A stretch of DNA of 64,000 nt from Monocercomonoides exilis PA203 (GCA_001643675.2 LSRY02000028.1:372001-436000); one strand, 5' to 3'; counted from the first letter of the stretch, positions 52,821 to 57,561 are shown. Made by a program: numbers and translations. The notes: generated by a model from the letters alone, not told the origin.

Positions 52821-53439
52821 AAAGAGAACGATATGAGCAAGTGAATGATTATCCTTTAGAACAGTCATCGGTAGAAGCACTCAAAAACACGTTTACATGT
52901 GTTCCAATGTTGCACATCCTCAATTTATTCTGGCACCGTTCAAAGAATGTGCTTATCAAAAAAAGAATACAAAATTTGAGGAAAAATGGAGAATATGCAT
53001 GACAATGTTGTATCGTCTGTTTTGTCAGTGGGAGAAATTTTGTTTGGAAAGTGAAATTTCATTTTCTATGCCCCTATAAATAATTGCTCGAATAATGATT
53101 TCTAAGTTAGTTGAAGATAAATTAGCTTTGTGTGAAGTTCGGAGATATTGCAATTAGGCACAGCTGTTTATATTAAAATAGAGCTTATATAGAAGATAAT
53201 ACAATTTTTCCTTTTTCACAAAAAATAGTGAAATACTACACAAATAGTTAATAAGGGCATGAACAATAAATTTTAATAAAATTAATTTATTTCATGTTGG
53301 CGTGTTATTTTAATCAGATGTTTTTTTTTTTGCTGTTTCATGTTACATTTATTTTATCAATTGAAGAATTTTTTAAATATTCTTTGGTAGTATTAAAGAA
53401 AAAAATTTTTAAAGTTATAAAAAAATTTTTTTTTAACTA

Positions 53440-54137
53440 GTGGGGGACTAAACCCGGGCCGGGGAGGAAACCCGGGCCACCAGTTTTTTAAAAAATATTT
53501 TCCAATTTTTTAAGCGAAAAAACATTTTTCAAAAATGAAAAAAATATACATAATATCACATGTGAATATGCAGCAATTCATGTGATTGGCACGTCCAAAT
53601 GTTTAATGCCTCTGTATATAAAAAATAATTTGTGATCACATAAAATTTTTTGATTTTTTCTTTTGAAAACAGAAAAAAAAGAATTTTCACTTTTCGTTAA
53701 CTTTTATGTTTATTTCACACAAATGGAATTTATCTGCTCACGTTTATTTGTTTCTTCAAGGTCTCAACGAGAAATAAAAAATTTTCTGTAAAAAAATTTC
53801 GACTTTTCGTTGAGACCTTGAAGAAACAAATAAACGTGAGCAGATAAATTCCATTTGTGTGAAATAAACATAAAAGTTAACGAAAAGTGAAAATTCTTTT
53901 TTTTCTGTTTTCAAAAGAAAAAATCAAAAAATTTTATGTGATCACAAATTATTTTTTATATACAGAGGCATTAAACATTTGGACGTGCCAATCACATGAA
54001 TTGCTGCATATTCACATGTGATATTATGTATATTTTTTTCATTTTTGAAAAATGTTTTTTCGCTTAAAAAATTGGAAAATATTTTTTAAAAAACTGGTGG
54101 CCCGGGTTTCCTCCCCGGCCCGGGTTTAGTCCCCCAC
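53440..54137. mobile_element. Palindromic foldback element (A): ~330-bp perfect arms with a 36-bp spacer
   Basis: 53437-53770 is the reverse complement of 53807-54140. GC-rich ends GTGGGGGACTAAACCCGGGCCGGGGAGGAAACCCGGGCC. Flanked by a duplicated TA (or CTAG; the two cannot be distinguished). Confidence 0.9.
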
Positions 54138-54138
54138 T

Positions 54139-55105
54139 AGAACTTGATTGATTTGACTGCGTCAAGTGGCATTAGATCGGTCAACATCCAATAAGATCGA
54201 TCTAATGCCATTGAGACCCAGTCAAATTGGATGTGACTCAGTCACATCCGATGCTTTCAATTCTGGGTGTCATGATCAAAATATTTTAGAAAAAATTTGT
54301 AATAATAATTAATAATTAACATCTCATTTTTTATCATTTTAATTGAATATAATGATTTTTCATTTAAAATAGTTTTCTATTTTGTCAGTTTTTTTAAATT
54401 ATTGATATTTCACGGAAAAACCTGGAAATTCTAATTGTTTATGTTTGACAATGATTATTTGAATTATAATAATGATATAAGAAAATTTCATTTCATTTTT
54501 CAATATTAAGAACAAGTTTCATTTGTTTTTTTCATTTCATTAATATTTTCAGAAAAAAGAAAAAATACAAAAAAAGAAGCTTTAGAATCATATCTTCTTT
54601 TTATTTTTTATTCGAAATGAAAAAATATCAAATAATGATTATTTAATAAACACATAACAGTAAAGAAAACACAAAAAAGTTTAATTGTTTATAAATATTG
54701 AAAATTAACAAAAAAAATGAATATGAAATAGTTAATTGATCAAAGCATAAACAAAGTTGGCTCGATTTCAACAGTAAAAATTAACAACTGAGTCACAATT
54801 GCGAAATTTTAAAGTTTCAAAAAACCAGAATCAAAATAAGAAAACAACAAAAACATAGTTATTTACAAAATATTCAAATAAAAAATAAAAACATATAAAA
54901 AGTTCAACGTTCATGAGCTTTAAATAACAAAAATATAAACAAAACAAAAAAATGTTTGATCACAACTTGTGATCATGAAAATCACAATCTCGCCCTTGGT
55001 GAGATCGAGGGAAATTCGATAAAAAATAGATAAATTCGACAAACCAGACTAAAATCGATTTGACTGAGTCACATTTTCGCGACTCAGTCAAATCAATCAA
55101 GTTCT
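54139..55105. mobile_element. Non-autonomous PHIS/Harbinger-type element (B), 967 bp
   Basis: 25-bp TIR AGAACTTGATTGATTTGACTG(C/A)GTC with 1 mismatch; subterminal TGACTGAGTCAC/GTGACTCAGTCA repeats; followed by ACT at 55106-55108. Shares the terminal AGAACTT with the adjacent autonomous element. Confidence 0.88.
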
Positions 55106-55108
55106 ACT

Positions 55109-57446
55109 AGAACTTATTCGAATTTATTTTGTTATATCGCATTAACTTTTTCTTTTTGGTATGAGTTTGATATCATTCCAAAAAGATCGACTAAGTTCCA
55201 ATGTGATTTAATCACATCCATTGTTTTTTATCATGGGTCCTTTTTGATCACAAAAATATTTACATATAAAGGGTGTGTTTGTTGTTATCATTTTTTGACT
55301 GTTTCGATCAATGTCTGAATCTTCACTTTTGAGTGTCTTAGAGAGAGTTGAAGAAAGAAATAAAATGCCTGCTTCTCCTGCTATCAAAGAAACAAAAAAA
55401 ACCACTTCAATCATCGAAAGAGCTTTGAATATTTTGGACAACACACCAACTGCCTTTTTTCGCTTTACGGGCTTCGCCCGATTTGAGTTCGATTTGTTAC
55501 TTCAACTTCTTCAAAAAGAAATATCTCCTCATCGAGGAAAAGAAAAGGCAATCAACAATTTTTCTGATCAACTTTTTTTATTACTCACTTTTCTTCATCA
55601 TGGATCCACTACACTAACATTTATGCTTTCTTCTTCTTTTTATGACACTCAAAATGCAACAATTCGACTTCTTCACAGAATTGCTGCAGACATCAGAGTG
55701 CCCTTGACTGATTTATTTCTCACTTTTCGCCCAGATCGTCTAGAAGGAATGAAGGAGGTGGGTCTTGTTTTGGATTGTACGGTAATTCCCACAAATCGTC
55801 CAGGTGGAAGGTTGGAATATGGAAAGAAATTTTATAGTGGAAAGCATCATATTTACTGTGTGAAGGTGGAAGTTGGTGTTAATCCTCGAATTGGTACTGC
55901 TTGTACAATCAGTCACGTCCAAACTGGGTCAACACATGATTTTGTCCTTTTCAAAGATCATTTACCTCAATTTGAGAGTCAATTGGGAGGAGCAAAGATA
56001 CTTGCTGACTCAGCATACATTGGAGCAAGGCCAGAATTGGGTGCAATAATCTCAAAACCTGTCGGAACACCCGAATTGGCATCCAAAAGAGTGATTGTCG
56101 AGCGATTTTTTGGGAGGTTGAAGACTCTTTTTGCCGTTTTCAGGCGTCCATGGCCATTTGAAGTGGAAAGAGTGGCGGAGTATTTCACAATTGCATGCTG
56201 TTTGACGAATTTTCACATCCTGAAAAATCCACTGACTGCAGTCGACTCAGATGCAAATTCTCGATTCATTGGATATCTGATGCAGTCACATGAGAAGAAA
56301 GTGGAAGCAAAGCGAATCGCTAATGAACGCTATCGAGTCAATATGAAGAAAAGATTGAATCCTGAAGCTCCTACGCCATCATCAATCACAACTCTGTTTT
56401 ATTCGGAAGATAGTTAGACTTTTTTATTTTTACCCATATTAATGTTTATAATGTTTATTTTACTTGTTTTTATATTTACATTACCATAACTATGTTTTTC
56501 AGGCAATTCTGAAGCCCAAGAGCAGCGAACTGGGGAAGATCAAAGAGAAAAAGAAAGAAAAGATGAAAAGGAGAAGAAAGAAAAGAAAACTGTCGAAGAA
56601 AAGGAAAGGAGAGACGAAATAATAATCAACGAAAGAGATGAAGATGAAGAAAGAGAAAGAAACAGTGACGAATTATCAAGTTGGTTTTTACCAAATCAGT
56701 GGAGGTCTCTTCGCTTTCAGCAACCCTCATCATCGTCTTCCTTTCCTTCTGCTTCTTCCTCTAGTGCTTCAATAAAAGAAAAGAGAGTCAGCGAAACTCC
56801 TTTGCAGAGCTTGTTAAACCAAAGACAGTGAGTTTTTCTATTGTTTTTTATTTTTCAATTCACCTTTGTTACCTTTTTATCTAAATACAATATGATTTTA
56901 TTATTGATAAGTTTTTTTGTTTAATTTTACATAAAACATATATAAGAATACAAGAAATTTTTATCGAATAACTTCATTTTATTGTTAATACTCAAAACAA
57001 AATATTAAAATATGAAATGAGTGAATTTGTTAAAAAAATATTATTTAAACATTCAGAACTATCATATTTATACTAAACATATAAAAAATATAGTTAAAAA
57101 TGGTTAAAAGTTATTTATACTCATTAAAATTGCATAAAAACATGATATAAATGCACTAAACAAAAAATAAACAAAACTCAAAAAACGGATCATAAAAAGT
57201 TTTAATAATATATGACAAACATACAAACAAAATGTTAAAACCTAACTCAAAATAATGGTGAAGTAATTTAAGAAACAAAAAAAGTTATGATCACAAGTTA
57301 CAAAACAAAAAAAATTTGAAAATCCTCGAGTTGCCTGGAAAAAGATTGAGAAAATACCGAATTGAGCGAGAAACATTCAAAAAGTCACAAATAATTCGAA
57401 TTTCTTCAATCAATTCGGTGCGGCAGGGAAAATTCGAACAAGTTCT
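55109..57446 (+). mobile_element. Putatively autonomous IS5/PIF-Harbinger (PHIS) superfamily DNA transposon (C), 2,338 bp, ACT target duplication
   Basis: 17-bp TIR AGAACTT(A/G)TTCGAATTT; ACT on both sides (55106-55108 and 57447-57449); encloses an intact transposase ORF. Confidence 0.92.
55311..56831 (+). CDS. DDE_Tnp_4-type transposase (368 aa unspliced; ~476 aa with predicted second exon 56503-56831)
   Basis: FFRFTGF (HTH-like), VLDCTVIPTNRP, FYSGKHHIYCVK, GSTHD, ILADSAYIG and RVIVERFFGRLK: the D-D-E triad appears intact. The GTTAGA donor at 56413 and TTTCAG acceptor at 56502 give an in-frame charged/Ser-rich exon. Confidence 0.92.
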
Positions 57447-57454
57447 ACTAACGA

Positions 57455-57535
57455 GTCCTGGTGGTGCAAAAGGAAAGCATACGGCACTTTATGGTTAAAC
57501 TTGCCGTGATCCTGGTTCAATTCCAGGTTGGGACA
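57455..57535 (+). tRNA. tRNA or tRNA-like gene with atypical 15-nt anticodon loop (literal anticodon TTA; identity unresolved)
   Basis: Cloverleaf: acceptor GTCCTGG/TTGGGAC plus A (3 G-U pairs), D stem GTGC/GCAT, anticodon stem CGGCA/TGCCG, variable TGAT, T stem CCTGG/CCAGG with loop TTCAATT. A box TGGTGCAAAAGG and B box GGTTCAATTCC are intact. Confidence 0.8.
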
Positions 57536-57538
57536 TTG

Positions 57539-57561
57539 TTTTTCTGTTTTTTCTTTTTTTT
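57539..57561 (+). terminator. RNA polymerase III oligo-T terminator
   Basis: T5, T6 and longer T runs begin 4 nt after the tRNA discriminator base. Confidence 0.65.

Follow-up and report, generated by a model that had tools for sequence, protein, structure and literature searches.

A stack of three DNA transposons upstream of a tRNA gene

We analysed a 64,000-nucleotide stretch of the Monocercomonoides exilis PA203 genome (GCA_001643675.2, LSRY02000028.1:372001-436000; hereafter the window, with positions counted from its first letter), in which three DNA transposons, A, B and C, stand in a row immediately upstream of a tRNA gene. Read base by base, the order is TA-[A]-TA/[B]-ACT-[C]-ACT-AACGA-tRNA. 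Element A (53440-54137, 698 bp) has the ends GTGGGGG...CCCCCAC, with its right TA at 54138-54139, and element B (54139-55105, plus strand, 967 bp), which ends AGAACTTGATTG...CAATCAAGTTCT, points its 3' end toward the tRNA. An ACT spacer common to B and C (55106-55108), a re-used 3-bp target duplication, is followed by element C (55109-57446, plus strand, 2338 bp), an autonomous PIF/Harbinger transposon with the ends AGAACTTATTCG...GAACAAGTTCT. Between C and the gene lie a proximal ACT (57447-57449, -8..-6) and an AACGA leader (57450-57454, -5..-1), both on the plus strand; all distances are relative to the mature tRNA 5' end, not to a mapped transcription start.

The native upstream flank of the tRNA gene (53416-53439, plus strand) is now ~4 kb away from it. 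This flank comprises a TATA-like box, TATAAAAAAA (53416-53425), a T9 run (53426-53434), AAC (53435-53437) and TA (53438-53439), and includes the left copy of the TA or ACT target. In silico excision of A, B and C restores TATAAAAAAATTTTTTTTTA-ACT-AACGA-G, with the TATA-like box at -28..-19 and ACT at -8..-6. Both the junction layout, ACT-[B]-ACT-[C]-ACT-AACGA-tRNA, and the rebuilt leader, with a TATA-like element at -28 and the target at -8..-6, had been proposed in an earlier reading of the DNA (the sequence-only reading), and they hold to the base; the same type of junction recurs in the genome against control searches with zero hits. Unoccupied tRNA genes in the tRNA-centred sample described below share the layout of A/T box, T-run and short leader.

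The stack is anchored by a Lys-like tRNA gene (57455-57535, plus strand) whose anticodon is UUA and which an 8-nt intron interrupts (57493-57500); the region behind the gene (57536-57561, plus strand) holds T-runs, from 57539, that resemble an RNA polymerase III (Pol III) terminator. ARAGORN with introns allowed returned a good cloverleaf with anticodon TTA and the 8-nt intron, and the Rfam tRNA model (RF00005), run with sensitive filters, gave 43.2 bits (cut-off 29). Because of its intron, the gene escaped ARAGORN in default mode and the fast-filter Rfam gathering scan. A 92% identical paralogue, an intron-bearing tRNA-Lys(UUU), lies at C62:191284-191370 (L052; contigs are named C# and fetched loci L###). 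The anticodon UUA would read the stop codon UAA, and position 37 is a U. A second UUA copy is found on C44 near 651381, and the window, C44 and C62 genes each have an 8-nt intron and an upstream transposon. M. exilis, an oxymonad, is reported to have the standard code, and this UUA/UUU group could be a tRNA family that is suppressor-like or in decay.

Elements B and C carry the inverted repeats AGAACTT...AAGTTCT, with an ANT 3-bp duplication on both sides in place of the usual TWA. Terminal inverted repeats (TIRs) with a 3-bp duplication, together with a DDE_Tnp_4 transposase, place them in the PIF/Harbinger superfamily. The first 140 bp and last 107 bp of the non-autonomous element B are common to 2.34-kb autonomous copies, which we call B-auto, and on this sequence evidence B is a deletion derivative of such elements; its closest other copy is 92.4% identical (L026). 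Copies of element C that are 96-99% identical occur elsewhere in the genome (L002-L005).

Element A is a non-coding, near-perfect palindrome, with 14 mismatches against its own reverse complement, and has TA on both sides. Its relatives in L019 and L047 are 66-67% identical, and L005 contains an autonomous relative that has similar inverted repeats (GTCGGGG...) and encodes a DDE_1 transposase (PF03184, E 1.4e-12). We classify A, by this repeat similarity to the DDE_1-encoding element, as a pogo-like miniature inverted-repeat transposable element (MITE) of the Tc1/mariner type. The sequence-only reading had described the stack as a candidate Harbinger-type system; this does not hold for A, whose family is itself targeted to tRNA genes, as shown next.

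Transposon ends lie just upstream of tRNA genes across the genome

We searched the PA203 genome assembly (82,301,135 bases in 101 contigs) for Harbinger ends followed by a tRNA gene. The pattern AAGTTCTANT, then 48-78 nt, then GGTTCRANTCC was found at 13 sites and at none in the control, while a looser pattern, AGTTCTANT with 48-80 nt to GGTTCRANNCC (that is, a Harbinger end AGTTCT-ANT and then a B box), gave 19 sites against 0. The mirror position, with an element end 10-40 nt after the B box and so downstream of the tRNA, returned 0 sites, as did its control. Pattern-matched tRNAs include Thr, Gly, Pro, Gln, Lys-like, Leu, Trp, Tyr, Arg and Asn; with Ala, Val and Lys from the fetched loci, at least 15 tRNA species are represented.

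Between the Harbinger duplication and the tRNA lie 1-12 nt (median ~6). Insertions fall between -3 and about -15, most often near -8. The spacers (AACGA, GCGT, AAAGAA, GTG, AT, GAA and others) share no common sequence, so position is set by distance to the gene and not by a motif downstream of the cut. Placement therefore depends on distance from the tRNA gene, not on the downstream flank or on tRNA identity and, as with Ty3, insertions cluster a few bp from the start of the gene irrespective of which tRNA it encodes. These counts, the empty downstream side, the many tRNA species and the single orientation described below bear out the tRNA-gene-directed integration suggested by the sequence-only reading. 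Of the peak that it expected at -5 to -10, the clustering just upstream is present; it extends over the whole interval from -3 to about -15 and does not sit at one fixed position.

The pogo-like family, a second superfamily, homes to the same tRNA-upstream interval as the Harbingers. In a whole-genome pattern search, pogo-like ends of the form CCCCGAC-TA followed by a tRNA after 3-7 nt occurred at 9 sites, against 0 in the control: C8:100986, C11:1039932, C16:378579, C25:1082148 (L047), C37:255210, C44:651365, C47:841403, C50:245436 and C56:141320.

Two samples of loci were then inspected. The transposon-centred sample consisted of the best 30 matches to element C, among which ends stood 1-7 nt before a tRNA in the window, L019 (Ala), L020/L022 (Arg), L025 (Val) and L029 (Tyr). 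Near-identical copies of C had no tRNA within 1.5 kb and were joined to further elements by ...AAGTTCT-ACT-AGAAC... junctions. Stacks that seemed to have no tRNA nonetheless led to a tRNA anchor wherever they could be followed: L002 to tRNA-Lys via element Y, L003 to tRNA-Tyr via a D element, L005 to the tRNA at C50:245436 via the autonomous pogo-like element, L024 to tRNA-Gln(CTG) and L027/L028 to tRNA-Pro. The comparison of copy positions with Pol III genes, and the search for stacks without an anchor, that the sequence-only reading had proposed thus favour targeting. Many stacks extend beyond the fetched loci, so that our counts are a sample of stacks and not a full census.

The tRNA-centred sample comprised the 21 best-scoring tRNA genes, picked regardless of transposons. 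Three of the 21 had an end of these families ≤7 bp upstream (L047, L049 and L050), namely a B-type end 6 nt upstream of two tRNA-Gln genes and an A-type end 5 nt upstream of one tRNA-Thr gene. If the 82-Mb genome holds, as a rough estimate, ~5,000 transposon ends, two independent hits alone would arise by chance with a probability of ~5e-5. Two tRNA-Lys(CTT) genes in the sample, L043 and L044, probably carry another TA-flanked element: a third type of end (...CCCGGGTATTTGACACGC-TA) lies 8 nt before each, and an inverted repeat resembling it directly follows a B-type 3' end at C12:1381931.

Some tRNA-adjacent copies belong to duplicated units of transposon plus tRNA, often arranged as inverted pairs (C23 301.6k/321.4k; C37 337.6k/338.4k; C42 663.8k/682.8k; C91 1075k/1077k/1239k). 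They include two head-to-head tRNA-Arg genes, each with a B/B-auto stack, in arms that are 99% identical. Separately, related sequences of ~95 nt directly follow Harbinger 3' ends at L006:3851-3945 and C37:392292-392373. Both contain a B-box-like GGTT(C/G)GAAC, with a T-run at the end of the L006 copy. Neither was called as a tRNA, and an Rfam scan limited to the L006 copy found no match. They may represent an undescribed Pol III-transcribed RNA that is also targeted by transposons.

Stacks are polar and in most testable cases appear younger toward the tRNA

The B-type inverted repeats are identical over ~20 bp. We therefore told the two ends apart by subterminal sequence and classified all exact ends in the genome. 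The 16 B-type 3' ends adjoined a tRNA (7), the 5' end of another Harbinger (8) or a TA-type element (1), and never ordinary DNA. None of the 9 B-type 5' ends adjoined a tRNA; their neighbours were the 3' end of another Harbinger (2-4), a pogo-like TA-type element (3) or ordinary DNA (2-3; Fisher p = 0.024 for the census). All independent orientable tRNA-adjacent elements were co-oriented with the tRNA (9/9, p = 0.004), and all resolvable element-element junctions were head-to-tail (7/7). Harbinger placement is thus orientation-specific, with the 3' end of the transposase gene toward the tRNA. Solo B elements upstream of tRNA-Thr and tRNA-Leu retain intact duplications (AAT/AAT and ATT/ATT, respectively), showing that the tRNA lies outside the element.

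The junction AGTTCT-ANT-AGAAC occurs at ~15 exact sites in the genome. All spacers within a stack are one and the same trinucleotide (in the window and in L004, for instance, three times ACT), which would follow from each newcomer entering the proximal duplication copy. Identity to the closest other copy also rises toward the tRNA, from 67% (A) through 92% (B) to 99% (C) in the window, from 79% to 97.5% on C37 and from 85% to 98% on C12, giving an age gradient in three of the four testable stacks.

The sequence-only reading had placed the insertion of A at the ACT|AG junction formed by B. The sequence is as it described, yet it would result equally from an A-first history, which agrees better with the polarity of the stacks. 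A would have entered the TA at -7/-6; B would then have targeted the ACT made up of the last two bases of A and the T of A's duplication, and C would have entered the proximal ACT copy. Such a history is possible because the pogo-like family itself targets the interval upstream of tRNAs, and it explains why three of the nine B-type 5' ends adjoin a pogo-like end in the same register. A may therefore have arrived first, with the stack recording insertion order; insertion of A into ACT|AG is a less economical alternative.

Several further arrangements of stacked elements were observed. At L027/L028 (C22:114061-120361), two tandem D-family Harbingers that are 99.9% identical belong to a stack of at least five elements, in which all readable junctions are ACT and the anchor is tRNA-Pro(AGG); with copies 96.6-99.9% identical, the D family has been recently active. 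At C1:536511, C7:1364027 and C25:823641, the 3' end of B leads into the 5' end of an F-type element (AGAACTAAAACGAAATT). The B/F junction is identical (ACT) at C1 and C7, and the spacer at C25 is ACT-ATT; the pair could be a composite that moves as a unit or a segmental duplication. A European Nucleotide Archive (ENA) metagenome contig (L053; 2707 bp, GC 52%) holds two head-to-tail DDE_Tnp_4 genes whose element ends adjoin near 1447. Head-to-tail Harbinger stacking may thus occur in an organism other than M. exilis, on a contig too short to show an anchor; the contigs of the metagenome relatives P0014, P0016 and P0018 are likewise too short to show a tRNA.

The Harbinger transposase carries a lineage-specific tail

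The predicted transposase gene of element C lies on the plus strand. Exon 1 (55311-56412) encodes an N-terminal helical region and the DDE_Tnp_4 catalytic domain (PF13359, E 1.1e-21, 77.5 bits against a cut-off of 24.8, residues 154-300). A putative 90-nt intron, GTTAGA...TTTCAG (56413-56502), separates it from exon 2 (56503-56831), whose 108 codons, ending in TGA, form an acidic and Lys-rich tail that is a candidate targeting module. The exons were searched separately. Splicing and expression of the gene appear plausible from a structure conserved in the B-auto family, from annotated paralogues and from one RNA-run contig, identical to 56534-56807 within exon 2, which hints weakly at expression. 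The read contigs, short and fragmentary over these repeats, contained no spliced joint and no empty-site allele.

Exon 2 contains the motifs W-F-L-P-N-Q-W-R-S and P-L-Q-S-L-L. In its general form, the tail consists of an acidic/Lys-rich stretch, W-x-x-P-x-Q-W-[KR]-S, a Ser-rich run and a terminal P-L-[QR]-x-L-L. Its motifs are kept in C, B-auto, D, X/E and Y; these are all the tRNA-adjacent Harbinger families, and their catalytic cores have diverged to 56-70% identity. Paralogues of the transposase bear the name of M. exilis DDE endonucleases, and three annotated paralogues (P0004, P0005 and P0007) join the catalytic domain to the tail and carry the motifs. The nearest outgroups, ENA metagenome proteins and Phytophthora proteins, lack the tail motifs; those closest to the C transposase include DDE Tnp4 proteins of Phytophthora. 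The W-x-x-P-x-Q-W motif is also absent from the pogo-like transposase. Pfam recognized no domain in either the tail or the first 150 residues of the transposase, and an AlphaFold model of P0004 from an alignment of 6 rows was too poor to use (mean pLDDT 39).

A second, Myb/SANT-like gene is typical, though not universal, of PIF/Harbinger elements. None was present in the C or B-auto copies, in which the transposase, with its C-terminal tail exon, is the sole gene.

A proposed model of Pol III-directed integration

Two transposase superfamilies integrate repeatedly upstream of many tRNA genes, at a position set by distance and, for the Harbingers, in one orientation. We consider it likely that the locus in the window is a chronological stack, built by DNA transposons that integrated serially just upstream of the tRNA gene and were recruited by the Pol III complex. 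The arrivals would have been, in probable order, the pogo-like MITE A, the non-autonomous Harbinger B and the autonomous Harbinger C. Each Harbinger would cut a 3-bp ANT at about -8..-6 and duplicate it; the next element would enter the proximal copy, leaving a single shared ACT and pushing the older elements away from the gene.

The transpososome would be recruited by the Pol III pre-initiation complex, through TFIIIB, TFIIIC or Pol III itself, much as Ty3 is by TFIIIB. The likeliest contact on the transposon side may be the lineage-specific C-terminal tail with its W-x-x-P-x-Q-W-[KR]-S and P-L-[QR]-x-L-L motifs. After insertion the native TATA-like box stands kilobases off, and the element ends offer no TATA-like replacement near -30. 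That occupied genes are still re-hit with the box displaced suggests that the internal A and B boxes continue to assemble the complex, which would keep such genes available as targets. Whether PIF/Harbinger and pogo-like elements evolved homing to Pol III starts independently, the Harbingers by docking through the tail motif, with the stacks as a chronological record, is in our judgement an even proposition.

Several observations weigh against Pol III-directed integration. Old solo copies in L012 and L013 have no tRNA within 1.5 kb. A C-like 3' end (L016:3418 onward) adjoins a tRNA-like gene that has a T-arm and a 3' acceptor but is missing its 5' part, through either insertion inside the gene or later deletion. 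Duplicated tRNA-adjacent units (two each on C23, C37 and C42, three on C91) mean that independent events are fewer than hits, and L004 showed no age gradient among the copies compared. The tether to the Pol III complex is inferred. Lastly, the unrelated DDE_Tnp_4 and DDE_1 superfamilies share one interval (spacers of 1-12 nt and 3-7 nt, respectively), which could mean that a generic DNA or chromatin feature, and not a specific tether, is recognized.

This last point leads to a structural hot spot, in which the TFIIIB-bent, melted and nucleosome-free Pol III start attracts any DDE transposase. That the pogo-like transposase reaches the interval without the W-x-x-P-x-Q-W motif agrees with this explanation. 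However, the strict orientation of the Harbingers at tRNAs and in head-to-tail stacks needs an asymmetric interaction, even though their TIRs are identical over ~20 bp, and the tail with its short motif is kept in every tRNA-adjacent Harbinger family despite the divergence of the catalytic cores. On balance we regard a hot spot without a tether as unlikely.

Random integration at ANT or TA sites, followed by selection such that only copies in harmless tRNA-upstream DNA survive in a gene-dense genome, appears very improbable. It draws on a genome that is 62.6% coding on complete chromosomes (PMC8767320) and on the safe-haven reasoning that is standard for tRNA-associated retroelements (PMC13269885). 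Selection does not account for an interval of ~10 bp, for the lack of ends just downstream of tRNAs or for the re-use of a trinucleotide. Moreover, young copies (97-99.9% identical) are already at tRNA starts, and 46% of the assembly consists of repeats (PMC8767320), so other tolerated sites exist.

Finally, that new copies insert beside resident TIRs or hop locally, the tRNA being incidental, is likewise very improbable: the ~15 exact Harbinger junctions and the close C copies, mostly flanked by other elements and not directly by a tRNA, speak for it, and the tRNA-free C copies briefly led us to favour it until their stacks were traced to anchors, but solo elements adjoin tRNAs with intact target duplications, no B-type 5' end meets a tRNA and no 3' end meets ordinary DNA, stacks are strictly head-to-tail and grow on the tRNA side only, a polarity that symmetric repeats alone cannot give, and the spread over at least 15 tRNA species on many contigs rules out local hopping. 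We therefore rejected own-end attraction as the main cause.

Relation to known targeting systems

Distance-based tRNA targeting is a textbook strategy of retrotransposons in compact genomes. For the long terminal repeat (LTR) retrotransposon Ty3 of Saccharomyces cerevisiae, TFIIIB guides the integrase to positions only a few bp from where Pol III starts. The M. exilis elements resemble Ty3 in inserting a few bp from the start of any tRNA, in leaving the gene body intact and in using one gene repeatedly. Ty3 is, however, a retroelement whose integrase acts on cDNA, whereas here cut-and-paste DDE_Tnp_4 and DDE_1 transposases produce 3-bp or TA duplications, and strict orientation and gap-free chronological stacks are features of the M. 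exilis elements. In Dictyostelium, DGLT-A inserts 13-33 bp upstream of tRNA genes. TRE5-A, TRE3 and DGLT-A offer a likeness in a protist, since they too show distance-based tRNA targeting, which is read as a safe haven (PMC5633606, PMC9012585). They differ in being retrotransposons and, for the TRE elements, in using positions ~50 bp up- or downstream, against -3 to -15 here; nor do the Dictyostelium elements form stacks with one shared target duplication.

A cut-and-paste likeness is provided by Tn7-like elements at attTn7, next to glmS, where TnsD, a protein bound to a conserved gene, directs the element into neutral DNA at a fixed distance and orientation, and where arrays can accumulate. 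These elements are bacterial and employ a multi-protein targeting machine at a single site downstream of a protein-coding gene. Tn7 also has target immunity, whereas occupied sites are re-hit in M. exilis. Within their own superfamily, the M. exilis Harbingers share with PIF/Pong and Harbinger3_DR a DDE_Tnp_4 transposase, short TIRs, a 3-bp duplication and non-autonomous derivatives, and differ in the ANT target (usually TWA), the missing Myb-like gene and the extra conserved C-terminal tail. Known PIF/Harbinger members prefer a DNA sequence and not a Pol III gene, that of Harbinger3_DR being a palindromic consensus of ~15 bp.

Dada elements, too, are DNA transposons of eukaryotes linked to genes for tRNAs and further small RNAs (PMC8869645). 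They form a separate superfamily whose sequence-specific insertions fall inside the RNA gene, in the anticodon or the acceptor/D-arm, and disrupt it, and each lineage uses one gene type (PMC8869645), whereas insertions here are upstream, independent of the downstream flank and spread over many tRNA species. Membership in Dada was considered and rejected, the transposases being DDE_Tnp_4 and DDE_1 and the tRNAs intact behind upstream insertions.

The target-specific eukaryotic DNA transposons listed by Kojima in 2022 are Pokey, CryptonV and Dada (PMC8869645), and a 2026 review names only retroelements for the tRNA-flank niche (PMC13269885). The M. exilis genome paper reports 3.72 Mb of DNA transposons and mentions neither tRNA nor Harbinger (PMC8767320). 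In line with the sequence-only reading, which knew of no such targeting in this superfamily, our full-text literature search, whose coverage leaves out most subscription journals, so that a precedent could exist, came upon no DNA transposons described as targeting tRNA genes on their upstream side.

If true, M. exilis would have the first equivalents of Ty3 and TRE5-A among DNA transposons, and with them a natural DDE transposase that targets safe harbours. Confirmation would mean that Pol III-directed integration evolved convergently in different transposon classes and, within one genome, in two superfamilies of DNA transposons. It would also provide a one-protein transposase with a candidate targeting motif that can be tested for programmable safe-harbour integration, as well as natural stacks that order insertion events in time. 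For M. exilis itself, an amitochondriate model, it would explain part of the unclassified repeats of the genome.

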